A stretch of 64,000 bases of DNA from Ruditapes philippinarum (taxonomy: Eukaryota): NCBI RefSeq assembly GCF_026571515.1, contig NW_026852998.1, positions 558,001-622,000 on the forward strand, given 5' to 3'. How positions within the stretch are numbered: position 1 is the stretch's first letter; every line of letters starts with the position of its first letter. The translations under genes and the position numbers were made by a program. The notes below the pieces were generated by a model. It was not told the DNA's origin, did no database searches, and was given only the letters and a program-made list of their open reading frames with translations. Positions 23,611-63,062 of the stretch are shown here, piece by piece.

Positions 23611-24420
23611 TTAATATTTTAGCCACCCCATGAAATCACTACATGTTCACGGAACTGACAGACTTAACTGCGGCATGACTACAACAATTATTTGAAGAGC
23701 ATGTTGACTATGCATTTAGTATATTTATTATAAATCTTAACGTTTTAGTTTTAACGTTATTATTATTTTACATAAATGTATATTTTACATTGTTATCTTG
23801 CACGTCCATAGACGCTGTTTGTGACAAGAAAACTCAGGGATATATTTGTTGTATATTATGTTATTCACTCTGAAATTAAGATGATATTCGATACTTGCTG
23901 ACGTACTGGTTACGTGTGCCTGTATTTACATATGTGCATTGTATTTTAAAACTACATTGTTTAACTTTTAAAAATAGATCTATGTGTCTTTATTTTGATT
24001 TATCACCATTAATGTTTTTAAAAAATATTTGTAAATATTTGTGATTGATATTTGAAAGATAATTATAGTAACTTCTTTTAATGGGTATATAGCCCCAATC
24101 CATTTTAAACATGACCAAAGATTCGTATTTTATTCATGACATATGTATGTGTTCAGTTTTTAAAACTACTGTTTTACTCTATTTTAGCAATCAGTGATTT
24201 TGCTTCTGTGATATTCTCAATTTCATTAGAATTATTATATAAACACGTGCAAGAATAAGAATATAATTAAATGAAATGCCTTATTAGGATATATCCATAA
24301 TATTGGACTTGAATTTCCTCTCGTCAAGACCAACAGCTCAATATGGAGATCATTATTGACATCATTACTAAGATGGATTTAAATTATCAAATATGTATAA
24401 AAATATCAATAAGATCTGCA

Positions 24421-24629
24421 NNNNNNNNNNNNNNNNNNNNNNNNNNNNNNNNNNNNNNNNNNNNNNNNNNNNNNNNNNNNNNNNNNNNNNNNNNNNNNNN
24501 NNNNNNNNNNNNNNNNNNNNNNNNNNNNNNNNNNNNNNNNNNNNNNNNNNNNNNNNNNNNNNNNNNNNNNNNNNNNNNNNNNNNNNNNNNNNNNNNNNNN
24601 NNNNNNNNNNNNNNNNNNNNNNNNNNNNN
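24421..24629. other. Assembly gap (N run)
   Basis: 209 N characters. Confidence 0.99.
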
Positions 24630-25050
24630 TAATGTTCAAACTTCTCCAAATATTGATGTTTAATGAACATCTATGTTTGTCTTTGCTCGCCATTTATACA
24701 TTGTAATGACATCATGGGCATATGCCTTATGGAATTAAAGAATAAACTACTATGATAGTCAGCGTCACTGTGTCTTAAAAAGAGAGATACACTACACACG
24801 TATAAACAAACATAATATACTGTATATACAAGCATTTTGTGACGAATAAAAGTATTTTCTGTTAACAATTGTTTGTTGTTTATAATTATATAAATTAGCT
24901 TGTTACTGATGCGATTTTCTTTCTGGAAAACCACGAAAAACGATTTTTTCCTCTGTCTTTTAGAATACGTCAGTTTTTCCATATGGCACTTACCCTGCTA
25001 ACATCATACATTTGACATACCTTTCGATGCAAAGTAATTACAACCATGCA

Positions 25051-35774: not shown

Positions 35775-36224
35775 TTCCTACTTTTAAACAAACTCACGAC
35801 AAGGCTGAACTACTTGGATATATTTTTTGAATATTTAATGTGTGGTCGTTGACTGTTAGACTTTGGATTCGTTGAGCATCATGTAATGTTACTCCAAATT
35901 CGTTTTTGTTCAAACGTCAACCTCTACATTCAACAGTCGACACGTTTGCGAACATCTATGAGTTTTATTTCTTTGTTCCAATAGTACCAATGCTCGTCCC
36001 TACTTGTTCTAAATTTTTCACCATTTTTCCTGTTTGTCGATCGAAGTTTGTTCAATGTATAACCGGAATATTCTTTGACCACAGTTCCAATTTGTTTAGC
36101 ACTTCGTACAAATAGCATAGAACCAGTAACTGATTCAAGTCGTACACAATCTAGTCTAGTTCGTGCAACTATAGCTGCAGATTTTCTACTTGGTCCTAAC
36201 ATTGCCGATTACTCTTTGTACAGT
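35775..36224 (-). pseudogene. Decayed, internally deleted duplicate of the NHL-like gene
   Basis: 36224-35950 aligns with 30204-29930 (SAMLGPSRKSAAIVARTRL vs SAMSASSRKSASRAAQSRL). 35910-35780 aligns with 29577-29455. ATG changed to CTG, early TAA, frameshifts. Confidence 0.82.
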
Positions 36225-39161: not shown

Positions 39162-42100
39162 ATGGATCTATTCAGGTATTTTTACAAATAAAAAATTGTT
39201 TAACATAATACATGATTTTCAAATTTACCCAAAAAGACATTTTGCATAACTTTACTCTCTCCTGGTTAAAAAAATATCTGATTATCCATTTTCTCCTGTT
39301 CTCATCATGCTTGTACTGTACATGTTGTAGATTCGTGTCTCTTATTTTGAAATATCGCATATGTGCCAACAATTAATATGAAAAAGGCAAAGCCTCAAAG
39401 CGAGCTCGATTTATTTTTTACCTTGAAAAAGAATGCAATAATCGTTCATTTTTATTTTACATTTTCCGTTTTAAAATTGTCATTTGGTATTTTATACACT
39501 ACTTCCGTTTATTTTGGTTCCCTGTCCCTCTATGGTGAAAATGTAAGTGCACAGGACACCAGTCTACGCTTCCGTTTTCAACCAGAATACATTGGTTTTT
39601 ATCGTTATCTTGTAATTCGAAAAGTTGCGATTTGTCGATTCAGAATTTCAGTACTTCGGACGAAAGTTTTCAAAACCATCATCTAGCAGGTACTCGCTTT
39701 ACCGTAAAGCTCACTTTGCGAGCAGGCCCTTTGGGCCAGCTCGTCGAGCTCGCTACTAAACTGAAATTAATATGAAAAAGGCAAAACCTCAAGGCAAGCT
39801 CTATTTTCTTTACCGTGAAATAGTAATATGAAAAAGGCAAAGCCTCAAAGCAAGCTCGATGTACTTTTAACGTGAAATAGTATGAAATAATCGCTCATTT
39901 TTATTGGATTTAACTCAATACAGGATTGGAGCAGTACCTGTAGACGCTTGCAGAAATCATAATCACAAATTGAAAATAGACAAATATCGTTTTTTTTCGC
40001 CGATTTTTACATTTTTCATTCATTATCTGACATAAATCGGTGTGAAAAGATGAATTAGACGTTATAAAGTTCATTCCGCTGGGTCGAAAAGCAAGATTTT
40101 AGCATTTTATAGTTCAAGCGCCTTGTCCGGTATATACCGGAATACGGTATTTAGTGTGGTGCTCCAATCCTTTTTTTAGTCACACTCATTTTTATTCCGA
40201 GTGCGTGTGACGTCACAAGTACTGTGTTAAATATGGCTATATATATTCACTCTATAATTTTCAAGCGAAATAAAGATTATTAAAAGTGAAATAAATGTAA
40301 AACTTTACACGTTTGCGACATTAAAATAGCGAACTTGATTTGATTGTTTTGCACGTGCTGTTTGGCGCTACATTGTGACGTCACGTAAACAATACTTTAA
40401 ACGTCTGTACAGCGTTAAGACTGAATAAAAGATATTGGTGTTCGGATAAATTTTCTTAGTTCGGCCATTTTCGTTCATTCACAACAAAATTTGACCAAAA
40501 AATGTTTTTATTTATCAGATTTTTCAAACAAAATGGCGCCTTCAATGTGAAAGCTTCCGTTATTCTGGTTCCCTGTCCAATTATGGTTCCCATAGACGTA
40601 CGCGGGTGACCAGTCTACACATCCGTTTTCAGTCAGAATTCCTCAGTTTTTATCGTTATCTTTAAATTCGAAAAGTTGCGAAAGTTTTCAAAACCATCAC
40701 TTTGCAGGTACTCGCGTTACCGTAAAGCTCGCTTTGCGAGCAGGCCCTTTGGGCCAGCTCGTCGAGCTCGCTATTAAAAAACTATCGTTCATTGTTATGG
40801 CTAGCTACTTCTTTTAAACTTTGTTTATTACGCATAATACATGTATATGACATAAACAGAAAGAAAAATATTTGGTTGCTGTCACTTTTGTGAGAATTAT
40901 TTCCCCTTTTTCATGTTTATACAACACATAAATTAAGATGTATATATATTATATTTTGCTTTCAGATTTAAATTTTCACTATCAACACTTACCGGTATGA
41001 AAATTTATAAAACATGGATCAATTTTATAATTCTTTATGTTTTTTAATATAAAAATTCCTCATAAGCTGTTATTTCAATGATCCGGGTTAAACTTAGTTT
41101 GATGCTTAGTTTGCTATTAGTTACTTGCCCCTTCACTGCTTTAAAATGTTGCCAAATAATATCAATGCAGGTAAATACTGAATAGGTCATTTTAGCAACC
41201 TCTCAGGAACAAATGTACAAAATGTATTACATATTTTCGGTTTATTTATATTATGTTGTAATAGATCAAAAGTTTTCATCAGTTTAGTTCAATTTTGTTG
41301 TTGTTTATTTCCATTATAGATCTAAGAAGCGAGATGTTAATCAGGCATCTTTAGAGGATGATGTGGGCCTCCAGAAAAAGCACCATGGTTTGTCAGGATC
41401 ACTAGATGATCTATTAGATATTGGAAAGGATGATGATGATGTCCTTGGTACAGCCTCAGAGAATACAGCCTCAGAATCAGGTAGATTTAATATTACTTAT
41501 ACCATTTCTTATTTCACATAGTTCTGAATGTTTTTGTGTTGTCAGATTCAATAAGTAAATTTTTAGTTATTACTACATGTATATTAGTTTATAAGAATTT
41601 AAGTTTGATTGTTTTAGAGGCCAGTAGCTTATTTAAACACTCTTGAATCCATTTCTGGAACTAACCAGTCCTAAGCATAAGGTGTAAAATCTATTGCTCA
41701 CAGAAACAAGGACTTGCCCCTGATAGGGTATGAATCCATGCAGCCAGCAATCCTTAGATTTCTTGTCCGAATCATTAACTGCTTGGCCACGCAGCCACTC
41801 TGAAAGTTATTGACAAGTCATATTTAAATTTAGAATGCCATGCTGTTTATTTTATTCTTTCAGTTTCAAATGAGGAAAACTTCATTTCAATCTGTATTTA
41901 TGAGGTGGCTGTAAAGTATAGTTAATATAAGTTAGTATCTATAGTTGTATGCATGATGCATACTATGTGTAGACTTTGTTTATGATAAACAGAATTTGAA
42001 TGCATAACATTTCATGTGAAGAAATTAATTCATTTAAGATTTTAAACTTTAAAAGGAGTATTGTTAAGATTTTGTTCTTATATTGATTTATAGATGATGA

Positions 42101-45100
42101 TGATAATGATATTAATAAAGCAAGTAAAAAACAAAAGGCTTTTGCCAAAATTTCAATCAAGCGGGCCAAGCAGAAAGAGAAGGAGCAGAGGAAAAAGACT
42201 GAGAAAAGTAATCTTTAATGTCACTTATTTCATATTTTGATTTAGTTCAGTATTAAGTGTATAAAGCTATATTCCCTGCTGCCTGGCAGCAGTTTACAAG
42301 ATTTATGTTTGAGTTTTGAAAAAAAAAGAGTTACTCCAAAATATTTGTATGACAGATATACATTTTGTATGCTTGTATAGATATATTTTTATATTTCCTA
42401 ATGTGCATGAAGTCTTTGCTAAATGGTTAAAACCCTACTTAAAATATCTGCATAATATTTTGTTCCAGAACATTTTATTCTGTTTATGTGCAGTATTCAT
42501 GTTTGTTAATTTAAATAACTGAAACTTTCTATGATACAACTCTTCAGATAATCAACATATTACCAAGCTCTACGTATCGGTTGTAATTTTATGTGACTAA
42601 ATATACAAATTTCAATTGTCTAAAATTGATGTTATATCATCAGTTTTATTAATATTATTAATATTTATAAGATAATTATGCCATAAGTTGTTATAATATA
42701 TTTAATGCATTTCAGATTTAATATCTATGGAAGATTTCCTTGGTAAACAGACAGAATTCAAGATGTGGCTTTATGAAGAGGTATAAATGAATTATCAACC
42801 ACAATTTATATAAAAAATACTTATTTAGTTTCTGGATAATGCAAAGGCTGTCACACTTTGGTTAAGGTATGCATGCAAGTTGGTATCTCCAAAACAACTG
42901 GAACTTCACACACTTAGATAATAGGATGTCACTGTTCAAGGTACATAACTCAGTTAGTAACTCTTGCATGGATTTTGACAGAGGTATGACCCTTTGTCAA
43001 CTTAGAAAATTCTTCATCAACAAGGCTCTTGTTTAACTATCTAGTACTGGAATAGTCAAGCACTTTGTTCTACTGACAGTACTTGTTCTTAATATGAATC
43101 ATTCTTTGAGTCTCATCACCAATGATATGGATATGTTTCTCCACCCCCCCCCCCAAAAAAACTTACAGGCTCTTTACTGTACCAGACACATGTATATTGT
43201 TCTGTAGTTGTTTTTTAAATTGAATTTTCTAGCCTGCTTAATGCTATGATAAATGAAGTTGACAACCTTTGTCCATTTTATAGAATAAGAGGTAAACTAG
43301 CATAATTTAGTAAACTTAAATGTTAGTTAATAGATATATTTAAACTCTTACTCAGCTGCAACCAAGAGTGAGTAGCATTTGCTTCCACCGTAAAACTTGG
43401 TCAGGATGCACATCCATACAGTCTGGCCAAGCTCCATACTGTTTGTTTATCATCTTTAAATTTCCCTAACTATATAATGGAAAGTTTGAAGAAAAGGAAC
43501 TGGACAAGTTCATTTTATGAAATTCACCAGACTAAATAGTAATTAAATGATATGTTAAATTATATTGTACAGAAAAGCAAGAATGCTGGAGAAATGTCAT
43601 CACCAAAATTGAAAGCTCATTTTAAACAGTTTGTGAGATTATGGAACAAGAAGAAACTGGCAACAGTAAGTACTTAAAAAGCAGCCTTCATCTTTTCTAA
43701 AGGTGAAATATCGATTCATATAATTATCAGATCAAAAGAATTAAGGTGGAAAATGAAGTTTACAGACAACAAAATACATAAACAATATGTAAACCCCTTG
43801 ATACCTCTAATCTAACGGTTCGCTCTCTAACTTTAAATGAGTAAAGGGCCTGGGGACGATTAGTTTCCCAATCTTCTGATTTTAAAAACGACCTCACATA
43901 CATATGCATTATAAATAGCTCTCCGGATGCTGTTTTGAAGAAGGCTTAACAGTGATATGATGCACATTTCCATTATTAAATTACTGAAATAATTAGTTGG
44001 AAACAACACAAAATTGTTTTTCCAACAGAAAATTAAAGCTGAAGGCCGCTTTAATATCTTTTGACAAGAGCTATTAGTAGATACATGGAAATCTTTGTAT
44101 AGCAACATCGTTTGGTAGACAGAAATGTTGGTTGCTGCTGAGAGTTGTTGATCGACAGATGTCAAAACTATATTGTTAAGTCTTACTTTGGGTAAAAACG
44201 ATACTGTTTTAACTTTTTGTACAGAGGTGACTGGTCTATAGAGGGTCGCTCTGCAAATCTTAAGCTGTACTTGAATGCAAAAATAATATCATAAATATGA
44301 CAGGCTTTTAAAAGTCAGCCAATCAATCAAATAGACCAGTTAGGCTGTCAAAGTCAGGGTGTTTATTTGACCTGAGACCTTGAGGCTTCAGTGGCTGAGT
44401 GGATCTAGGTTAACTTCAATCGACTTTCCTGTCATCGCTGTAGGTTCGAGCCGCACAAGCCTTGTCGAGATTCTGCATGTGAGAAAGTTAGTTTACAGAA
44501 CGTCAGTGGTTCTACTCAGGTGCCTGTTTGTGCCTGAAATAATGTACAGAGGGACACCTGAGCACTGACTTGACACAGGGTGTATCACATAGTGAAGGTT
44601 ACAGTATTTTTATATGAAACCAGAACTATATTTATTCTGAATTAATTTTTATGCAATTTCTCATAAATTTTGTAACTTAATGAAACGCCTTTAAACTAAA
44701 AAAGGACCATCAAAATTATATGCTTTCTACATGTATTTATAGAAATATTACCGATGTTCAACTTTGCCAGAGAGTCCTGCTCCTCTGACACCTCAGAAGT
44801 TTAACTTTCTGTCAGATGAAGTAACTGAAGGAGGGAGTCCTCTCTTCCATGATCAGGACAGTGAAGCTCCTGAAAAAGATGTTCTAGCATCGCCATTTGT
44901 CACATTTGGCAAGACACCACCAAAGGTGTTCAGATCAAAGAAATTTCAGTTTTTTGGTTCTTCTGGGTCATCTAAGGAAGTTGCACTTGTAAGTTTTTTC
45001 ATCAGATTTTGTTCTTAAAAGTTTTCTCTAAGCATTTTAGACACATTGTTTAACAGTAAATGGTTTAAGCCAGCAAATTTGTCTTCTTTATTTTAACTTT

Positions 45101-48100
45101 TGAACTGCTTATTTGTGATACTTGATTCCAATGTTTTAAGATAGACAACATGCAAACCTGGCATTTCAGGCTCCCTGATTTAAGGTCAAGGTCACAGTAA
45201 GAGGTCCTTGGTTCAACCTAGAATTTCTTGTTTGTCTTGTAACTTTTGAGCTGCTTAACAGATATTAATATTACATGGGTCAAATGTTTAACTCTGAGAC
45301 AATTTATAAACTCCACCTGATTGTTATTAACTTTCTTGTCCAATCAAACTTTTGAACTACTTAAAGGATGTTGATGATACTTTGGCAGAGCAAGCATTTG
45401 AGGCACCACATTATCATAATAAGGTCAAGGTCTTAGTTTATAGTCAAATATTTTAGTCATTTATTTTGTATCCACCCTTCGTCTCTCAAACTGTTATTAT
45501 TAATTTATATTCTTAGTTTAAATTTCATTGAGACAGAAAAAGCATTTTCTATGATATGTTTCAGGTGGGGTTCTATCTCACTTGAAATATTACTTTTTAA
45601 CCAGGTTTTCAACGAAAACCGGGTTATTGTAATGCCGAAGTCGGCGGGCGTCAACTTTTGGTTTCCGCTCAATAACTTTAGTTTGCTTTGGCCTATTGAC
45701 ACCAAACTTGGTGTGTAGGTAGCTTATATCAAGAGGCAGCTTGGGATTGCTACCCAGGTGTCTGTGATCAAGGTCAAGGTCACTGTTACTAAAAATAGAA
45801 ATTCAGTTTCCGCTCAATAACTTGAGTTTGCTTTGGCCTATTGACACCAAACTTGGTGTATGGATAGCTTATATCAAGAGGCAGCTTGGGATTGCTACCC
45901 AGGTGTCTGTGATCTAGGTCAAGGTCACTGTTACTAAAAATAGAAATTCAGTTTCCGCTCAATAACTTGAGTTTGCTTTGACCTATTGACACCAAACTTG
46001 GTGTATGGATAGCTTATATCAAGAGGCAGCTTGGGATTGCTACCCAGGTGTCTGTGATCTAGGTCAAGGTCACTGTTACTAAAAATAGAAATTCAGTTTC
46101 CGCTCAATAACTTGAGTTTGCTTTGGCCTATTGACACCAAACTTGGTGTATGGATAGCTTATATCAAGAGGCAGCTTGGGATTGCTACCCAGGTGTCTGT
46201 GATCAAGGTCAAGGTCACTGTTACTAAAAATAGAAATTCAGTTTCCGCTCAATAACTTGAGTTTGCTTTGGCCTATTGACACCAAACTTGGTGTATGGAT
46301 AGCTTATATCAAGAGGCAGCTTGGGATTGCTACCCAGGTGTCTTTGATCAAGGTCAAGGTCACTGTGACTAAAAATAGAAATTCAGTTTCTGCTCAATAA
46401 CTTGAGTTTGCTTTGGCCTATTGACACCAAACTAGATGAATGGGTAGCTTATATCAAGAGGCAGCTTGGGATTGCTACCCAAGTGTCTGTGATCAAGGTT
46501 AATGCATTTAGTTTTCATGTTGTAACTTGAGTTTGCTTTGACCTTTTGACACCGAACTTGCTGAGTGGCAGCTTTGGATTGCCACTCAGATATCTGGGAG
46601 CAAGGTCAAGGTAATTTGCTTACAATAGAATTTTCAGTATCTACTCAATAACTTCAGTGCATTTTGACCTATTGATTGCTGTCACATCAAAACTAGGTCG
46701 TTGAAAACCTGGTTTTCGTCGCATTGCGGCGCTTCTTGTATCCCATTAAATTTTCATTCTAACATATACTGGCCTATATTGGGTGTGTTAGTTTGATATG
46801 TTTATTTTGTTATCATTGTAATGTTAATTTGCTTAGAGCTGTCATTGATAGAGACAATATCGATGTATCGTTCATATTTTTCTGCCAATCAATAATCGAT
46901 ACACATTTGAAGAAAACGATAAATATTATTATTTAAATATTTATTAATTATGAAAATGCGATCAAAACATATACAAAAACAGATGACTATGTCTAACACT
47001 AAGTTGTATTTACATTATGGACGTATTTTATATTGTAATGACAAAATATGATCAGAAAAAAATCATGCAGAGGACACCTATAAACAAGGCACAACATATT
47101 TGTATGAACAGAACATGTATTTTACTAAAATCATTTAAAGGGGTATAAAAATGAATTATATACAAGAAATTAGGAGTCAGTAGTTATTTATATATTGGTG
47201 TATCACTGATATTTGTATTTCAATATCGATGTACGGTCAATATGCTTTGCACTGAATCAATGACAGCTCTAATTTTGTTATCATATGTTATGTTTATTTT
47301 GTTATGTTTTGTTTATTTTTTGTTTTAGTTATCTGTTGCGCCCATAGGTTCCCCACAAGTTGTACAAATGGAAAAAGAAAATATTTCTAAAGAACAGGTA
47401 TATGTAGTTTAAATTTTAATGCTTTTACTTTGTTCAGAAATCTCCTTATTTAGAAAAGAAGAATGACTTTTTATGCCATTACTTGATTTTGTTATCATAA
47501 AAAGGGGACAGTACTCCATGGATTACCTTGAACTTGTTTGTGGTTTATTTGATTTATTTTATTTTAGACTTTAATGTGCAAAAGACAGTTGAATAGTTTG
47601 TTTACTGGTTCTGTTTATATTGCAAATACACTTAGGAAGTTAAAACTTTACAAAATTAAGCAAATAATTGTGGAAAAAAGTCTGGCAAGACTACTATTTA
47701 GAATTTAACATTTTAAAGTTTAAATCTTAACTAAATTTCAGGCTTTAAAGTTTATTGATATGGGTTTAGAAGAAAGTTTCTTAAAATGAATTTTGTGTGA
47801 TTACATACAGCCATATTCATCCTTCTTGTTTTATGTTGATATTTTTCTTATTTCCTCTAAAGATATCACCTTGTCCATCCTTAAGTCTGTCGAAAATGGG
47901 GTCATATCATAACTTTTGTTGTTCTTTTATCATAAGACAATATTGTGCGTGCAAGATTGAGTTCCTTGAATGTTCACAGACACAGGCTGAGTCAATCAAC
48001 CTAAAATGGATTTTATTTTTCGGTATGGTCGATGACTTTGTGATGTTAAAATGACTTGGCACAGTCAAGTGTACTGCATGTAAGATCAGGGTGGACAAGG

Positions 48101-51100
48101 TCAAGGTTACATAAAGGTCAAAGGCCAAACATGGAATAATTTTTTCTGGGTTCTATCCTTTATTCCTTGATGGGTTTTAAAATTACAAGGCATAAATGTT
48201 CACCATTGGGATCCAAGTCAAATTCTATTGTCAAGAGTAATCTTACAGGGCATAAATCATCTTTTGATAATAAAAATGATATTGATGCTTTTTGTAAAAG
48301 TCTTGTTAACACATTATTATTTATGTCTGCAGGTAAAATTTGTTATTTTCAGATATTACTATATAGTGTTATGATAGTATTAGTGAATATAAGTCATATA
48401 CAATAATGTCAGCTTTTGTTTTAGTACCAGGTACCAAAGCTACGCAAAAAGAAAGAATCTGGCGATGACATTCAGAAAATGTAAGTATATTCAACAGCAG
48501 AGATAACTAACTACCTATGTCATAAATAAAGAGCCAGAACAGCTTTCTTATGAAGTCTGACCAGGCTCTATACTCTATACTGATGATTGCTCAGTTTTAT
48601 TGTTTTGATACTAAAATCTTTAAAACCAACAACGGACAGGTCCAAATTAACAGCTGGACATGTTCATTGTACATAGTTGACCAGTGTCTGGATCTTATGC
48701 CCAATATAATGTGTATATTTATATTGTATATTTATATAAACATTTACTGTTTTAAAACTCTTATAGTTAACCTACTTAATTATGGGAAATAAAGTCCTTT
48801 AAATGAAAGTCATAAAAATTAGGATTAAGATAGAAAAGCAAATGTTCTGCCGAGAGATGACCAAATATTTTTAACATCAGCATAAAACCCAACCAAACAT
48901 GTCAATGATCTTTTTTAAGTCTCAGTATTAAACTGTTTACTTATTGCAGGCTGTCCAGCGTCCCTAAAATTCCTAAAAAATCCTAATTTTTTTCAGTATG
49001 GCTAATATTCCTAAAAAAAATGAAAAATTCAAAGGGAATTCCTAAAAAAGCCCTATTTTTTCACTTAAATTCCTATTTTTTTTATCTTCTGTGATAAACA
49101 TATTGCGAAACAACCATGTTTCAATCACAACCTAAATTCGAACAGTCAGTGGAGCTGATGTCATGTCTGACTAAATTGCATAAAGTCACATGTTGTATTT
49201 ACTTCAACTCCTGCAGAAATGTACTTGATAAATTGTCAGATGTTATCATAAAAATAATAAGAAACTGTTTGTTTTAAATGGAACAATGAAAATTGTCTGA
49301 CTTTGACTATATCAAAATTGTCACCTGTTTAAAATTTTGATAAAAAAAATTTCCAAGGAAGTTACATTTTTATTGGCTACAGAGTTTTACCATTTACCTC
49401 AGTCTTAGGTGTATTCAAAGCAACTTTTTACATGATGTACCACTGAATTTCATCAAACTTTATGTAGGGGTCCTTATTAATAAAATCTTAATTTGTAATC
49501 AAGTTATTTTCAAGTGATGACTGTATAACAGATCTTTTGTAAGTGATACCAGCTGGTAGATCTAGACAAGTTTCAATATTTGCTAATTATAAAGTGGGTA
49601 AAGTAAACTGGCAGTAATTATTGGATGCTTTAACCATTTTGCTACCCAATTAGCATACTAAGAAGTGACACCTTCAGCTACCCTTTTTGTACACATTAAC
49701 ATGTTCTGAACACATGCTATAACATATAGTGTAAGTTTTTTTTAATCTGGAAAAAAAAACTGTCGAAAATCATTGAAAAAGGTGATACTGTTGTGAAATT
49801 TTCTACAATTTTTAGTAGCCTGATTTATCATGAACAAATTCTTCATAGGAATATATACCCTGCTGTTTGAATTTAAGTTTTAATATTCCTGGGAATGACT
49901 TGAGTGGGTCATATCGTTTTTATTGTTTTTTAAGAAAGATCAAGACTTGTTGAAAATGTACCAACCTTAAAATAAATAAATGTTGATAAGAAAATGCATT
50001 TATAGCTAAAAGCTAAAATAAATTTAAAGCATTATTTCCCCTTCCATTTATTATTGGCTAATCATAGCTTAACTAATTGAATATAAGTTGTTCCGGTAAA
50101 CTTATAACTTTGAAAATGTTTTCATTCTAGTTATGTTTTAATGTAGTTTTTCAGCTCTTTTTAAAGGCAGTTGACCAGTGAATCCATTTCTTCACTGGTG
50201 ACTATGGAATACTGGTAACACCTCTACTATAACCGAACTAGAACATTATTTGTGAGTTACTTTTGTGTCAAATATGCAAATTTGAGTCCATATTATGGTC
50301 TTTTGAGGCCATAATTTAGTTATAAAATTTCAAATTTTAGCCCTAAAATTTCTTTTGTTTACCCTAAAATTCCTAATTTTAGCCCTAAAATTTCTTAAAA
50401 ATTGCCCTAAAATTTGCCCTAATTTTTTGTCAGAAGGTGCTGGACAGCCTGTTATTGTCCCCCGCCTTTTCGAAGAAAAAAGGGGGATATAGAAATAGGC
50501 TCTGTCCGTCTGTCTGTCTTTCCGTCGGTCTATTTTGGGTTTAGGGGCTATATGACAGTAAAGAGAATAGGTTCATTCTGTGATCAAAGAGTTTATGGGC
50601 TGGTAGCCCTTAAGAAAACAAAGAAACTAACAAAGAAAATAGCCTCTAAACCCAAAATGTTGGAACGTCTGTCCGTCCGTCACACTTTCGTGTCCGGTCC
50701 ATAACTTTGTCATTTATTAAAGGAATCTGAAATAACTTGGCACTAATGTTTGTTATAATAAGACGATGTGTCATGCGCAACAACCAGACCCCTACCTCCA
50801 GGGTCAAGGTCGCACTTGCTCATTCAAGGTCAACATTGTCTATTTGAGGGTATATGTCGTGTCCGGTACATAACTTTTTTATCTTTTAAGGGATTTTGTA
50901 AATACTTGCCACAATTGCTCACAATAATGAGTAGATGTGTCATGCGCAACAATCTGTCACCTACCTCCAAGGTCAAGGTCACACTTGGAGGTCAAAGATT
51001 AACAAAGTCTGTAACAGGGTATATTTCGTGTCCGGTCCATAACTGTCATTTATCAAAGGAATTTGAAATATCTTGGCACAAATGTTTGTTATAATAAGAC

Positions 51101-54100
51101 GATGTGTCATGAGCAACAACCAGACCCCTACCTCCAGGGTCAAGGTCGCACTTGCTCATTCAAGGTCAACATTGTCTATTTGAGGGTATATGTCGTGTCC
51201 GGTCCATAAATTTTTGTGCCCCCACTTTAGTGGCTGGCATTTAGATTTACCCTTGTCCTCGGTCCATCCGTTCTCTTTTGTGTCGCACGTAAATCAAAAA
51301 GTATTTGACCTAGAGTCATGAAACTTTACAGGAATGTTGATCAGCATGTGTAGTTGTGCACCTGGGTAGTTTCATCTGGATATTTTTAGTATTTTTAGAG
51401 TTATTGCCCTTGACTTAGTAAAATTTTGTAATTTTTCAACGTGTGTTGCATGTAACTCAAAAGTATTTGACCTAGAGTCATGAAACTTTACAGGAATATT
51501 GATCAGCATATGTAGTTGTGCACCTGGGTATTTTCGTTTGGATTTATTTAGTATTTTTAGAGTTATTGCCCTTGACTTAAATTTTTTTTTGTAATTTTCA
51601 ACTTGTGTTGCATGTAACTCAAAAAAGATTTGACATAAAGTCATTAAACCTTATGGGAAGGTTGCTCAGCATATTTAGTTTTGCACCTGGGGTTTCGTGG
51701 ATTTATCCAGTATTTGTTATTTCCCTTGACTTAGTAAAAACCATTTCATTATGATGTTATTTGTTCCTTGAGTGCTTGAGTTAGAATCAACCAACTTTAC
51801 AGGAATAATGATCAACATCACTAAATTACAGAAATAATGATTCACATCACTGTGAAGCTATGCAACTGAGACTTTGCATGTGGATTTTTTTCAGTTTTGT
51901 TAGAGTTATTGCCCTTGACTTACAGAAGTATAAATTTGCAATTTTCAACTTGTTCATGCATAGCTCAAAAGGTATTTCACTTGTAGGCCTGAAAGTTTAC
52001 AAGAATGTTGGTCAGCATGTGTACGTATGCGCCTTGGGGTTTGCTTGTGGATTTATTCAGTATTTGTAAAGTTCTTGCCCTTTACTTAGTAAAAGATTTT
52101 TAGTTTTCAAAAAATATTAGACCTAGAGTATATGTTACATGGTATATTTTATGTCCCGTCCATAACTTCTTCATAGAACAAGGGATTTTGAAAATATTTG
52201 GCACAAATAGTCACAATGATAAGATGATATGTCATGTGTAACACCAGTGTCCCTACCTCCAAGGTCAAGGTCACATGTAGAGGTCAAAGATTAACATAGT
52301 CTCTTAGAGGGTATATTTTGTGTCCCATCTATAACTTTTTCATAGTTCAAGGGATTTTGAAAATACTTGGTACAAATAGCTACAATAATAAGACGATATG
52401 TCATGCACAACACCTGGACCCCTACTTCCAAGGTCAATGTCACACTAAGAGGTCAAAGCTTAACATTCTTTTTTTTTCTTTAATAAATTTATTGTTGCAT
52501 TTGCAGATCTAGCATTGATCATAATTTTGGACTGAAAGTCCTTTAATCCATACCTCAATCTTTTTAAATAGCACAATTTTATGCTTCATATAAAACTTCC
52601 CTTGAAACTTGAAACTTTTTATTTAATTAAACGCCTGTTTCTATTTAACAATATTCAACTGCGTTGTACAGTACATATAAATAATAAGAATAAAATTGTG
52701 AATGCATGAGAATATGTGGATCAACATCAAGTGAAATAAAAGCTTTTACATACAATTCCAATTAACATATTTTTAAAAAATTGCAGAGACCATGAAATGA
52801 TAAAACTGATTGATATACATGTAGCATGAGATAAGATTATGTACATACATGTAACTTGATTACAAATAGATTAAAAAGAATAAAACATTCATTTACATTG
52901 CACATTCATCACACTGTCAGTTATCAGTTATACGTTACTCATGTTTATCTCAATTCAGATTTTAAAATAGTGATTCAAACTTTCTGAAAAAATGTGTTTT
53001 AAGATTTCTCTTAAATACATCAATATTCTTAGATTGTTTCAACTCTAATGGCAGCGGATTCCACAATTTTGGACCAATAGTTCCAAAACTTCTGTCACTA
53101 AATGTTTTTCTTTTATTGAATGGAATAATGTAGCAGTTCTCAGAGGTTTTAGCTGAACGTAGTCGGGTATTTGGTACTTGTTTGGTTAGGAGTCCAGAAA
53201 GGTATTTTGGAGCATGACCGATTGAACAATTGTATACAAAAAGTCAAAATTTTATATTCGATTCTAGATTTGATGGGCAGCCAGTGAAGGTCGAACAGTG
53301 CTTGCCTTGAACTGTCAAATTTCTTTCGTTGCAGAACTAACTTAGCGCACATGTTTTGAATACGTTGCATTTTTTTCAATTCAAAATCGGATACACCATA
53401 AAGAATGACATTGCAATAATCCAAGTGTGACATTACGAGTGCTATAACTAGTATTTCAGCTGCTTCTTTGGTGAGGTATTTTCGGATACGTTTTATTCTA
53501 AGATAGTTTAACATTGCTGTACGGCACTTTCGTTTGACATGTTCCTTGAAATTTAGTGTTTGGTCTAGAAATGCGCCTAAATATCTAATGGACTCCTCGG
53601 AGTTGATCTTATCTCCGTTAATACAAATGGATTTTAGGTGACACTTTTCGAGTTGTTGAGAACTTCCAAATGTTATGAACTCTGTTTTCGATGAGATCAT
53701 CTTGAGTTTATTAGCGTTCATCCAGTTCATCCCCGAGGCGGGGGACGTTGGTAACTGTTACAAATTCTTGTTAGGGGAGAAATTGTGTAAGCAACCAGAG
53801 AGCTTAGCCAGTGCAGCCTTGGTATGGTATTCCAAGGGTCTTGGGGTTCGAGTCCTGTTAGATTGACATTTAAATTACAATTTGTATTTCAACATTAAAT
53901 TTTATAAAGACAAGTACACAAGTAGCTCTTGATATGAATTTTGTAGTATAAAAGATTATTACATATCATTGATGTATTTTATACTTTTCAGGCCTAGAGG
54001 TGCTACTCCGTACAAGGTTTCAATGTTTCCATGGGTATCAACAGAAGTAAGCGAGAATGACCAATCAGATGATGTTGATATTTGCTCTACAGCTACTCCT

Positions 54101-56242
54101 CCAAGTTTTAACCTACAAGAGGAGGAGGAGTCTTGGCCTCCGCCACCCTCAGATAGCGAGTTACTAGGTGAACACACAACAAGAACTCATGATTCACCAC
54201 ATGTACCTCCACCCCCTCCTCCTAGAATGGGAAGTCTGAAGAAAAGGGAATGTACTTCAAACTCTCCAAAACTGGCTGGTAACTATGCAGATCCGTATGA
54301 TAAACTTCCAGATCCACAGTCTAAACAGAGACTTGTTACTTCTCATTATCAGGACCCTGTAGACTGTGTTCCTCTTGTAAAACAGAGAACCATTCCGGAA
54401 GATGCTAAACTTGTTCTCCAGAATTTGGCAGGAAATGATGAACCAGATTTGAGTTTGTATTCTAAACCTGTGAAAGAGAAAAGATTAAGCAAAGAGGAAT
54501 TGGAAGAACTTTATGCAAAACCTCTCAAGAAAGCAAAAAGAAATAATATTGGCAGTCTATCAGAAGGTACAGAAAAGCCTGAGCCAGTCTCTGGTGAACC
54601 AAGTGATTTGTACAATGAAATAATGGAACATATAAACAAAAGCAGTTCAGAAGACACTAGTAAGATAACAAGTTTTAAACCCGACCCTGATTATGAAACA
54701 ATTGATGAGTGTCTTGCCAAGGTTAACAGTGAATCCAGTGAAAGTAAAGGCCATATTAGGGAAGTTAAAGATGATACAAGGAAAGTAAAAGATATGATGG
54801 ATAAAAGTGGAGAAGAAGGTACACAAAAGTTTGCTACAATTTCACGGTCAAAGAAAATGAGGGTAATGGCTGCTTCAACTGAGAAAATCTATGAAACCTA
54901 CCTGAGTCTAGGAAGGAATGCAAACCCTTTCAAAGGGAAAACGGATATCCCAAAATTACCAGACACAGCTTCAGACTTTAACTCTGGTCCCTTTACACAT
55001 TCCTTGAAGTTGAAATCTAAATCTCAACCAGACATTTCATTCAGTGAAGGACTTCAAACATTTGATATAGATATGAACAAAGACCAGGATCACTTAAGTT
55101 CTGTTCCTCAGTTCAGCTCTTTCAAACCAATTGAAAATAACAAAAGCACACATAAAGATAGGAATGAAAATAAATTGAAAGACAGCGGAAGAGCTAAAAG
55201 TTACGAGGATGGTTTAAGGAACATAGAAGAGCCAAGAACACCAATTATAATGGCCACACCATCATTTGATTCTCTCTGTAATGTGACACCTCTTAGTTGT
55301 AAATCTTTTTCATCACATAGCTTGCCAAATAAGTCTGGGTCATATGAGAGCTTGTCTTCCCAAAGTCACATGTCAACCTCAACTAATTCAAGCCTTTCAT
55401 TTGGCCCAGATGATAAATCTGGCTCACTTCAGAGCTTGCATTCTGACAAATCACTTTCACCAGTAAAAGAAGAAGAGGAATTTGATCAATGCATGGATGC
55501 AAAGAATGAGTTAAAAACTAAAGTTGAATTACTTGGAAAACAAAATACGAAAAGTCTGACACATGAACCTGTGGACTCTGTGAATGGTGATTTTGAATCA
55601 GTTAAAACAAATGTTGTTCCTTTGACCCCAGGGAAAATAAGTGCTCTAAAACATGGAATAGATTTATCAGTGTATCTACTGAAACCTGCAAAACAAGATG
55701 ATAAAAGTAAAGAAAATGTCCCTGAAAATGAGAAGACTTTGCAGACAACATTAGACAGCCATGTGCGAAAACCTAAAAAGACTGGTGAACCTCTTGTCAA
55801 TCAGAAACTGTTTGATAACCAATCAAGGTTAGCTATAAAAGATAAATTGTCTGGGGTGAAGACCAAAGTTGATGTAGGGAAGTCCTCTTCAAGGAAGGAA
55901 ACAGAGAGGCGACATACTGTACAAACAGTTCAAGATATCCCTGTAAAATATGAAGATGCCATGACCGTAACTAATGCGGCAAAAAGTAGAAAGGGTGAGA
56001 CTGTTTTGTATGGAAAGTCAAAGTTTGAAGAAGGTTTTAATGGAAGTGATGAAAGCTTGCATTGGCCAGATAGCAAGAGACATTGTGGAGATAAGAAACG
56101 TATGTTAACTGTAGATGACCACTATCTTGAGACTGATCTTGATAAAGTGATCACTGATAAAAGCCGGAGGTCAATGAAGAAAAGTAAAAGTCACAGTGGT
56201 TTTGATACAGGCACTAGTACAGTTGTAACAGATATCTGGTAG
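39162..56242 (+). CDS. Nine-exon gene, 1022 aa: SCI1-like helical domain plus long disordered tyrosine/proline-motif tail (uncharacterised)
   Basis: Exons 39162-39175, 41320-41480, 42094-42207, 42716-42780, 43573-43665, 44743-44988, 47329-47397, 48425-48480, 53992-56242. All introns are GT-AG, phases 2,1,1,0,0,0,0,2 are consistent, and the total of 3069 nt is one open frame. Confidence 0.8.
39372..40775 (-). mobile_element. Tandem array of a HINE-like element (two long copies plus an extra terminal fragment) in intron 1
   Basis: The ~70-bp GC-rich end GCAGGTACTCGC...GAGCTCGCTA occurs at 39687 and 40705. The other end AATATGAAAAAGGCAAAGCCTCAAAGC occurs at 39375, 39769 and 39825. SubTIR GCGAGCTCGA at both ends. 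Confidence 0.72.
41320..41480 (+). CDS. SCI1-like gene, exon 2
   Basis: TTATAG| ... CAG|GTAGAT; open frame SKKRDVNQASLEDDVGLQKKHHGLSGSLDDLLDIG... Confidence 0.78.
41612..41800 (-). mobile_element. tRNA-derived SINE (CORE-like body)
   Basis: Minus strand: GTGGCCAAGCAGTTAA A-box-like head, GGATTCATACCC decayed B box, TTGTTTCTGTGAGCAA...CTTAGGACTGGTTAGTTCCAGAAATGGATTCAAGAGTG body. Confidence 0.55.
42094..42207 (+). CDS. SCI1-like gene, exon 3 (acidic then Lys/Arg-rich, NLS-like)
   Basis: TTATAG| ... AAA|GTAATC; 114 nt, phase 1-1. Confidence 0.78.
42716..42780 (+). CDS. SCI1-like gene, exon 4 (first half of the SCI1-like domain)
   Basis: TTTCAG| ... GAG|GTATAA; NLISMEDFLGKQTEFKMWLYEE. Confidence 0.8.
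43573..43665 (+). CDS. SCI1-like gene, exon 5 (second half of the SCI1-like domain)
   Basis: GTACAG| ... ACA|GTAAGT; KSKNAGEMSSPKLKAHFKQFVRLWNKKKLAT. Confidence 0.8.
44378..44562 (+). mobile_element. tRNA-derived SINE (bivalve-type)
   Basis: A box GTGGCTGAGTGG, B box GGTTCGAGCC, body shared with 30862-30981. Confidence 0.7.
44743..44988 (+). CDS. SCI1-like gene, exon 6 (KYY end of domain, then SP/TP-rich segment)
   Basis: TTATAG| ... CTT|GTAAGT; overlaps ORF 44764-45018. Confidence 0.82.
45594..46739 (+). mobile_element. HINE/pearl-like element with ~7 x 145-bp near-identical tandem repeats
   Basis: SubTIR AACCAGGTTTTCAACGA / TCGTTGAAAACCTGGTT; units at 45661/45806/45951/46096/46241/46386; 3' CGTCGCA-TTGCGGCG hairpin + CTTGT end. 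Confidence 0.9.
46834..47271. mobile_element. hAT-type MITE (TAG ends)
   Basis: 16-bp TIR TAGAGCTGTCATTGAT / ATCAATGACAGCTCTA; internal ATCGAT repeats; degenerate 8-bp TSD (AATTTGCT/ATTTTGTT). Confidence 0.72.
47329..47397 (+). CDS. SCI1-like gene, exon 7
   Basis: Long T-rich acceptor TTTTAG| ... CAG|GTATAT; 69 nt, phase 0-0. Confidence 0.72.
48425..48480 (+). CDS. SCI1-like gene, exon 8
   Basis: TTTTAG| ... AAT|GTAAGT; the phase-2 end fits the acceptor at 53991. Confidence 0.75.
48947..50451. mobile_element. Non-autonomous TIR transposon with CAGG ends and 6-bp TSD (hAT6-like)
   Basis: 13-bp TIR CAGGCTGTCCAGC / GCTGGACAGCCTG; TTATTG on both flanks; clusters of CCTAAAA/CCTAAT subterminal repeats. 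Confidence 0.8.
51211..52135 (+). mobile_element. Second HINE-like element nested in the host array
   Basis: New 5' end TTTTTGTGCCCCCAC interrupts a host unit; different ~165-bp tandem unit; 3' end not recognisable. Confidence 0.68.
52601..53730 (-). mobile_element. L2-clade LINE, 5'-truncated (RT C-terminal region + 3' UTR)
   Basis: WMNANKLK..SKTEFI...RYLGAFLDQTLNFKEHV...SHLDYCN..LYG...QRIQN..AKLV...LHWLPIKSRIEYK; frameshifted tail WNPLPLEL..FKTHFF; 3' (GTTTCAA)n tail. Confidence 0.9.
53992..56242 (+). CDS. SCI1-like gene, large terminal exon 9 (low-complexity, probably disordered)
   Basis: Acceptor TTTTCAG at 53991; ~750 open codons in AT-rich DNA; S/K/E/D/P-rich; no folded domain recognised. 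Confidence 0.88.
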
Positions 56243-61260: not shown

Positions 61261-61511
61261 CTTTTTGTCATGTTGGCCTGAAACAAGAATTTAATATTTC
61301 TTTTACAGAATACACCTTAACATGTAATATGTTCTTATAGTTGTGCAATGTGGACACAGTATCAAGGTCCATATGTTACCATATTAATAAGACTTCTCTT
61401 TAAAACATTTGCAAATAACACGACGATTTTAGCGGCTATGCATGTATCTTTAACTATTGAAAATACTAATGCGGTATTGTCTGAAGCGTAACATTTCTTT
61501 ACTATATTTAG

Positions 61512-63062
61512 TATGGAACGCCGTGACTGTCTTATGTAATCAATGTTTTTTTTTATCTTGTGAAACGATGATATTATTTTGTCGTTTGAGCATGTTAACA
61601 TGTGCAATTTACATCATGTCTTGTCAAAAGAACATGCTAACATGTACAAACAGCATGTTAACTTGTCAAATTATTATGATGACATGTGCAGACAACATGC
61701 TAACTTGTCAAAGTATCGTGATGACTTGTGCAAATGACATGGTAACTTGTCAAAGTATAATGATGACTTGTGCAAATGACATGGTAACTTGTCAAAATGT
61801 ACTGATGACTTGTGCAAACGACATGTTAACTTGTCGAATTATTGTGATGACATGTGCAAACAGCATGTTAACTTGTCAAAGTGTCATGATGACTTGTGCA
61901 AACGCCATGTTAACTTGTCAAAGTATAATGATGACTTGTGCAAACGACATGTTAACTTGTCGAATTATCGTGATGACATGTGCAAACAGCATGTTAACTT
62001 GTCAAAGTATCATGATGACTTGTGAAAACAGCATGTTAACATGTCTGATAACTATGATGACTTGTGAAGACAACATGTGAACTTGTCAAAGAATCGTGAT
62101 GACTTGTGCAAATGACATGTTATCTTGTATCATGCTGACATGTCAAAACGTACTGTTAAATTGTCAAAGTCATGATAACTTGTGCAAATGCCATGCTAAC
62201 ATGTCAAAATTCCATGATGACATGTGTAAACAGCATGTTAACTTGTTGAATTATCGTTATGACATGTGCGTACAGCAAGTTAACTTGTCCAAGTATCATG
62301 ATGACTTGTGCAAACTACATGTTAACTTGTCCAAGTATAATGATGACTTGCGCAAATGCCATGCTAACTTGTCAAAATTTCATGATGACATGTGCAAACA
62401 GTATGTTAACTTGTCAAATCATCGTGATAACATGTGCAAACAACATGCTAACTTGTCCAAGTATCATGGTGACTTGTGAAAGCGATATGTTAACTTGTCA
62501 AAATTTCATGATGACATGTGCAAACAGCATGTTAACTTGTCCAAGTATCGTGATGACTTGTGCAAATGCTATGTTAGCTTGTCAAAATATGATGACTTGT
62601 GCAAACGACATGTTAACTTGTCAAATTATCATGATGACTTGTGCAGACAACATGTTAATTTGTCAAAAAAATCGTGATGACTTGTGCAAAACACATGTTA
62701 ACTTGTTAAGGTATTATGAGCATGTCATCACGATAATTCGACAAGTTAACATGCTGTTTGCACATGTCATCATGAAATTTTGACAAGTTAACACGTCGTT
62801 TGCACAAGTCATCATGATATTTTGACAAGTTAACATGTCGTTTGCACAAGTCATCATGATACTTTGACAAGTTAACATGTTGTCTGCACATGTCATAATG
62901 ATTATTCGACAAGTTAACATGCTGTTTGAACAAGTCAGCATTGTCTTTAGACAAGATATGATGTAATTTGCACATGTTAATATGCTTAAATGACAAAATA
63001 ATATCATCATTTCACAAGATAGCAAAAACATTGATAGCATAAGACAGTCACGGCGTTCCATA
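61512..63062. mobile_element. Foldback-type TIR element with 42-bp tandem repeats in both arms, TA-flanked
   Basis: TATGGAACGCCGTGACTGTCTTATG ... CATAAGACAGTCACGGCGTTCCATA; ~120-bp unique inverted ends, then 42-bp arrays in opposite orientation meeting at ~62710. Confidence 0.88.

Follow-up and report, generated by a model that had tools for sequence, protein, structure and literature searches.

The locus examined here, within a 64,000-nucleotide stretch of Ruditapes philippinarum DNA (the window), raises the question of whether three small exons encode, once spliced, a domain of SCI1, a protein that the literature consulted presents solely as regulating the development of flowers (PMC9013909; PMC11720235; PMC13552211). 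Our answer, which we hold at a probability of roughly 80%, is that these exons encode the PF27660 hairpin in a single-copy, expressed clam gene belonging to an old eukaryotic family, and we propose that its protein acts by docking in the nucleus. The RefSeq gene model, the Pfam 38.1 family, and PF27660 tags are already public; what is new is the uncharacterised clam member.

The gene and its transcripts

The RefSeq protein of LOC132730938 (P0001) is 999 residues long in isoform X2, and tblastn of this protein onto the window placed all of its coding exons, with canonical ag/gt borders throughout (Table 1). The gene comprises nine exons and eight introns in AT-rich sequence (about 30-38% GC in the window). 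It lies on a large contig amid animal genes, and its introns carry animal-type repeats; in a SINE-like intronic repeat, ARAGORN found no tRNA. The sequence of exon 1 agrees with the N-terminus of the protein, and the transcript contigs begin with bases that fall outside exon 2. At the other end of the gene, the open reading frame at 53969-56239 is 100% identical to the protein. The cassette exon, located by tblastn of P0002, is left out of isoform X2, but the orthologues of Mercenaria, Mactra, and Dreissena contain it.

Table 1. Exons of LOC132730938, in coordinates of the window.
Feature	Position	Strand	Content	Placed by
Exon 1, coding part	39162-39175	+	ATG GAT CTA TTC AG, then gt donor; MDLF and 2 bases of Arg5	
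Exon 2	41320-41480	+	Acidic/Ser-rich N-terminal segment, residues 5-58	tblastn and spliced contigs
Exon 3	42094-42207	+	Acidic run, then Lys-rich segment (37% K+R)	
Exon 4	42716-42780	+	Start of predicted hairpin, NLISMEDFLGKQTEFKMWLYEE: short turn helix and helix 1	
Exon 5	43573-43665	+	Predicted hairpin loop and helix 2, KSKNAGEMSSPKLKAHFKQFVRLWNKKKLAT	
Exon 6	44743-44988	+	End of predicted hairpin, KYY (44743-44751), then QKFNF aromatic motif, then FVTFGK	
Cassette exon, 69 nt, in frame	47329-47397	+	LSVAPIGSPQVVQMEKENISKEQ, with ag/gt flanks	tblastn
Exon 7	48425-48480	+	YQVPKLRKKKESGDDIQK and 2 bases of Met	tblastn
Exon 8	53992-56242	+	Tail of about 750 aa, ending ...VVTDIW and stop	ORF and tblastn

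Exons 4-6 splice in frame to exactly the 54-residue peptide quoted in the initial annotation, which corresponds to residues 99-152 of the RefSeq protein. Introns interrupt the coding sequence of the domain in phase 1 ahead of N97 and in phase 0 behind E118 and behind T149. The borders of exon 4 read cag/ATTTAATATCT...GAAGAG/gtataa, those of exon 5 cag/AAAAGC...GCAACA/gtaagt, and the acceptor of exon 6 tatag/AAATATTAC..., giving the translations LISMEDFLGKQTEFKMWLYEE for exon 4, (KSK)NAGEMSSPKLKAHFKQFVRLWNKKKLAT for exon 5, and KYYRCSTLPE... for exon 6. The end point first assigned to the domain, 44760, does fall inside exon 6, but it coincides neither with the end of the hairpin at KYY nor with the end of the exon. 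The description of the domain as hidden is apt insofar as exon 4 is missing from the list of open reading frames and exons 5 and 6 appear only within frames of 41 and 84 amino acids, but not insofar as a RefSeq model exists.

Public runs were aligned to positions 41250-45150, and support for the junctions comes from assembled contigs, not raw reads. All four junctions in this region (41480 to 42094, 42207 to 42716, 42780 to 43573, and 43665 to 44743, each GT..AG) are present in one spliced Logan contig from each of two runs, X7 (2020) and X9 (2018), which belong to separate studies, so that the proposed splicing is borne out by independent transcripts. The raw RNA-seq runs X21 and X23 cover the exons thinly, and no junction reads were listed at such depth. 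Most population variants in exon 6 are silent, with eight of ten synonymous and nine at third codon positions, and the frame is therefore under purifying selection. Within the sensitivity of an exon-wise profile search, the clam genome holds one locus only, matching the profile in exon 4 at 42715-42780 and in exon 5 at 43570-43665 (E 6.6e-5).

Sequence and predicted structure of the domain

Several lines of sequence evidence support the assignment of exons 4-6 to the SCI1_hairpin domain and of the clam gene to the SCI1 family. PF27660.1 (SCI1_hairpin in Pfam 38.1, a name taken from the Atlas output) is precomputed on the LOC132730938 protein and on its orthologues in Mercenaria, Mactra, Mya, and Dreissena. 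Taking residues 95-172 of the clam protein, unbroken from RefSeq, as the domain query, a profile of 78 columns from five bivalve domains (A1) was searched with HMMER against 1.84 billion proteins, yielding 311 matches at E<=1e-3, of which 35 reach E<=1e-10; the 311 include Wolffia and, at E 2.9e-6 in that collection, Salvia SCI1-A. In the reverse direction, a profile made from 19 plant-type sequences only recovers the clam protein with 50.7 bits (E 1.5e-8 at Z=1.84e9), against a best score of 8.3 bits among 2000 shuffled animal proteins. Profile searches thus connect clam to plant and plant to clam, and together with the PF27660 tag they uphold the family identity that had been suggested from a sequence pattern. 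Pfam scans of exons 3-6 singly (E<=10) and of five full-length bivalve proteins returned no relevant match, but the library scanned lacked the PF27660 model, and the empty scans are therefore not evidence against the domain. A match to SR-25 (PF10500) in 2 of 11 short animal members (E 1.5e-4) was weak and was taken as compositional.

In an alignment of 36 animal, fungal, and plant sequences, five residues (W20, F41, F44, N49, and L53) are invariant and a further three (E16, L21, and W48) are conserved in at least 90%; the clam has all eight, and its domain fits the core pattern EF..WL ... F..FV..WN...L...YY. Exon 4 contributes the W, E, and L of these columns, while exon 5 contributes F, F, N, L, and the near-invariant W.

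The domain as modelled comprises about 55 residues that would form a pair of amphipathic helices with a short loop between them, a K-Y-Y turn at the end, and a Lys-rich helix ahead. In the 78-residue segment, and with this alignment as input, AlphaFold2 places helices at residues 7-10, 14-25, 34-49, and 55-59, with mean pLDDT of 87-91 in 10-residue blocks over residues 11-50. The full-length model is confident only at about residues 63-150, where it predicts a Lys-rich helix (67-96) and a hairpin (101-119 and 129-146) that agrees with the domain model; its block means climb from 59 (residues 61-70) to 84-93 (residues 71-120), and 827 of the 999 residues have pLDDT below 50. The models thus confidently predict a helical hairpin in an otherwise disordered protein. 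Searches of the PDB found nothing meaningful by sequence (with the clam protein and the A1 and A2 profiles), and by fold Foldseek gave no match and VIA-align a best Z of 3.9. A Lys-rich segment upstream of the domain had been noted as a family trait, and exon 3 indeed encodes one, which is likely to be a nuclear localisation signal.

The hairpin and its Lys-rich lead-in are the best-conserved and the sole confidently folded part of the clam protein. Identity of the hairpin to Mercenaria, Mactra, Dreissena, and Sinanodonta is 94, 89, 78, and 71%, respectively, against 70, 51, 42, and 23% for the tail. The tail, which makes up 75% of the protein, is predicted to be almost wholly disordered (pLDDT below 50 for most of it), and it contains motifs common to bivalves: a poly-Pro run, LYAKP, IYETYLS, TPSFDSLCNVTPLS, GIDLSVYLLKP, RRHTVQT, YLETD, and a C-terminal IW.

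Relatives in plants, fungi, and animals

The clam and plant proteins have the same hairpin (37% identity over 70 residues, P0140) with the same invariant W/F/F/N/L, a Lys-rich segment directly upstream of it, and an aromatic motif about 12-16 residues past the YY. They differ in what follows: plant SCI1 (about 150 residues; 154 in PMC9013909) ends just past the aromatic motif, whereas the clam protein continues into its disordered tail and, at six times the length, is not a small protein. The aromatic motif itself varies, being H-x-W-x-I/F in plants, YKWKF in fungi and deuterostomes, and QKFNF in the clam, with F in place of the plant W. Stretches rich in K and R precede the hairpin in plant, fungal, and animal members, and the common layout is an acidic/Ser-rich region, a Lys-rich region, the hairpin, and the aromatic motif, to which animals add FxTFGK.

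Opisthokont members come in two sizes, with fungal proteins of about 300 residues and marine invertebrate proteins of either about 300-430 or 700-2400 residues. The short ones (about 300-430 residues) include Branchiostoma LOC118416126, Strongylocentrotus LOC763426, and proteins of Holothuria, Saccoglossus, and Priapulus, as well as of the fungi Calcarisporiella and Choanephora. Like the clam protein, they have the PF27660 hairpin and an N-terminus that is acidic/Ser-rich and then Lys-rich; they carry a YKWKF-type motif and, in the animals, FSTFGK. They also have GPxLP-type repeats, an ELAPKATGxEAKxEK module, and a C-terminal AKEKAKMxALLExARA...ALW module, all of which the clam lacks. The C-terminal modules are common to the proteins of about 300 residues in fungi and deuterostomes and are absent in plants, while in molluscs a long, distinct tail stands in their place. 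The long members are lophotrochozoan (Mercenaria LOC123551840, Mactra, Mya, Dreissena, Sinanodonta, Saccostrea, Mytilus, Haliotis, Aplysia, Pomacea, Liolophura, Owenia, and Lingula) and resemble the clam protein in having the hairpin near the N-terminus, at about residues 60-190, and a long tail. Bivalve orthologues align over their full length, with 68% overall identity between clam and Mercenaria, but across the long members the tails (about 700 to 2440 residues) keep their sequence only within classes. Automatic names of long members, such as 'mucin-12-like', 'futsch', and 'lysine-specific demethylase 9-like', are misleading.

Among the 150 of 311 A1 matches that were listed, those with names include proteins of gastropods, a chiton, Owenia (an annelid), Lingula (a brachiopod), a bryozoan, a nemertean, echinoderms, hemichordates, and amphioxus, and A1 matches also include early-diverging fungi. 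Two word-index searches, seeded with the amphioxus protein and with a profile of the short animal members, extended the list to sea urchins (S. purpuratus among them), sea stars, Priapulus, oysters, Mytilus, and Mucoromycota, every one of these relatives carrying PF27660. Neither the word-index searches nor the named A1 matches listed (about half of the 150 are unnamed) included a vertebrate, arthropod, nematode, cnidarian, sponge, or choanoflagellate member, so absence from these groups is only suggestive. If the family is indeed missing from vertebrates, insects, and nematodes, this would explain why its animal members are unstudied.

The initial annotation knew of no characterised animal member. 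This holds for the literature searched, in which no animal SCI1 member is described, the papers containing the SCI1 phrase or AT1G79200 all concern plants, and no paper was found on PF27660, SCI1_hairpin, or the matching InterPro and PANTHER identifiers. Membership as such is already on record, since the PF27660 tag sits on dozens of animal proteins in the public collection and a Holothuria protein is named 'Style cell-cycle inhibitor 1'.

In a maximum-likelihood tree of 50 domains and 65 alignment columns, in which many forks lack resolution, all 32 animal sequences fall on one side of a branch with support of 93/95, and the plants group together (100/99). Molluscs, echinoderms, and hemichordates each cluster. 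The grouping of the animal sequences favours vertical descent over contamination or transfer.

Possible function and competing explanations

Plant SCI1 is a nucleolar and speckle protein that restrains pistil cell number, is degraded at mitosis, and binds a 14-3-3 protein (PMC9013909; PMC11720235; PMC13552211), and its partners include CDKG;2, which is homologous to CDK11, as well as cyclin L, RH35 (a helicase of the DDX41 type), and proteins associated with the spliceosome (PMC9013909; PMC13552211). Its localisation, partner binding, and inhibition of proliferation are known for tobacco and Arabidopsis only (PMC9013909; PMC11720235; PMC13552211), and in the literature searched we found no mapping of the part that binds partners. 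For the clam protein, we infer localisation, partners, and any effect on proliferation from plants only. The Lys-rich segment would bring the protein into the nucleus or nucleolus, where the hairpin would dock it on a conserved partner, possibly a CDK11-type kinase (CDKG;2) with cyclin L, a DDX41-type protein such as RH35, or spliceosome-associated proteins, and the disordered tail may carry lineage-specific short motifs. Strong constraint on the Lys-rich lead-in, the hairpin, and the aromatic motif makes nuclear docking the most economical reading, and we regard nuclear entry followed by docking on an SCI1-type partner as the most likely mechanism, though at somewhat less than even odds. The role may have shifted in the clam, whose protein is so much longer than plant SCI1 and lacks the C-terminal modules of fungi and deuterostomes.

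Such a shift could go further. The hairpin might be a mere anchor or self-association module in a protein dominated by its long tail, for example a scaffold in signalling or in the cytoskeleton with no connection to splicing or cell-cycle control. The sheer share of the tail, its bivalve-conserved motifs, and the missing C-terminal modules are what such a scaffold would lead one to expect, but the greatest conservation is found in the hairpin and its Lys-rich lead-in, and the aromatic and FxTFGK motifs are common to the short members; both observations suggest that an ancestral N-terminal function has been retained, and we consider the scaffold explanation unlikely, although it is the strongest of the alternatives.

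The remaining alternatives concern whether there is an SCI1-family gene here at all, or a working one. Because the domain is short and Lys-rich, amphipathic helices could in principle resemble SCI1 by composition or chance, but we reject this as extremely improbable given the distance between the plant-only profile match (E 1.5e-8) and the scores of shuffled proteins (at most 8.3 bits), the invariance of the aromatic and Asn positions, and the precomputed PF27660 tag. Equally improbable is that the sequence is a contaminant or was recently acquired by horizontal transfer from a plant or an alga, such as one in the clam's food. The characterised members do all come from plants, but orthologues occur in many animal phyla, the tree roughly tracks species with animals apart from plants, and the clam gene has eight introns with animal-type repeats on a large contig with animal genes. 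A decaying locus, with exons that are spliced yet yield no working protein, might account for the low RNA depth on the exons in the runs examined; we think this very improbable, since the reading frame runs unbroken through every exon, bivalves show strong conservation of the hairpin, exon-6 polymorphism is mostly synonymous, and an in-frame alternative cassette exon is conserved.

The presence of the hairpin, under clear constraint, in clams and sea urchins as well as in amphioxus and early-diverging fungi suggests that the function of the SCI1-family domain is general to eukaryotes rather than specific to plants, plausibly at the interface of splicing and the cell cycle. A more specific history can be offered only tentatively, and we would sooner bet against it than for it in its entirety: the SCI1 hairpin may have been present already in the ancestor shared by plants, fungi, and animals as a nuclear adaptor tied to CDK11/cyclin L, DDX41, and the spliceosome, kept in marine invertebrates, missing in vertebrates, insects, and nematodes, and rebuilt by lophotrochozoans into a disordered scaffold of 700-2400 residues. 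With both the gene model and the Pfam family publicly available beforehand, the present finding is of modest practical value. For work on plants, it marks the hairpin as the part to map for partner binding, and for work on animals, it points to a conserved, unstudied family of predicted nuclear proteins of which none was found in the usual model animals. If the hairpin is indeed an ancient adaptor, its role would have to be sought in clams, oysters, or sea urchins.

A probable alternatively spliced exon in the SCI1_hairpin gene

The 69-nt cassette exon of LOC132730938 is missing from isoform X2 (P0001, the 999-aa RefSeq protein) while the orthologues of three other bivalves, Mercenaria, Mactra and Dreissena, keep it, and from this comparison of sequences we infer that the exon is probably alternatively spliced.

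Features in and around the SCI1_hairpin gene
Feature	Position	Strand	Description
HAD-type phosphatase ORF, 326 aa	20301-21281	+	uninterrupted; Hydrolase_6 plus Hydrolase_like, E about 1e-21
HAD-type phosphatase ORF, 328 aa	22624-23610	+	uninterrupted; Hydrolase_6 plus Hydrolase_like, E about 1e-21
Run of N	about 24400-24640		assembly gap or masked stretch
ORF, 408 aa	28978-30204	-	uninterrupted; weak NHL / beta-propeller signals only, under Pfam thresholds
Shorter ORF	35930-36202	-	related-looking to 408-aa ORF
SINE-like dispersed repeat, ~180 bp	44380-44565		intron 5
Tandem arrays	45661-46499; 50688-51213; 51279-51739; 52141-52466		within introns of the gene
Cassette exon LSVAPIGSPQVVQMEKENISKEQ	47329-47397	+	69 nt, in-frame, ag/gt borders
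Antisense ORF, 193 aa	53149-53730	-	last intron, immediately 5' of exon 8
Long ORFs in repeat region	61457-63061	both

Repeats and other open reading frames

The very high RNA depth at 44394-44655 in all four runs is accounted for by the SINE-like dispersed repeat of intron 5; an initial search of the clam genome gave 2577 candidate copies, the scored ones being 75-86% identical, and ARAGORN found no tRNA within the repeat. Among the intronic tandem arrays, one has a 145-bp unit repeated 5.8 times at 97% identity, and the others have 162-169-bp units in 2-3 copies at 75-84%. The 193-aa antisense ORF, for which Pfam gave no match at E<=1e-3, is possibly a transposon remnant. The long ORFs near the window end, built on one strand by Met/Cys/Thr-rich repeats (…MLTCQSIMMTCAN…) and accompanied by HVNLSKYHDDLCK repeats in other frames, belong to a tandem DNA repeat that is open in several frames. 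The two HAD-type ORFs are neighbours and look like a tandem duplicate pair.

Additional modules in short SCI1_hairpin proteins

Among proteins encoded elsewhere than in the window, the short SCI1_hairpin members from animals and fungi (P0053, P0046, P0202-P0206, P0054 and P0213) have additional modules in common, namely GPxLP-type repeats, ELAPKATGxEAKxEK, LMGGxDDF and a C-terminal AKEKAKMxALLExARA...ALW, matched by no model in the Pfam copy scanned. The 1050-aa SCI1_hairpin protein of the annelid Owenia retains the last of these modules at its end.
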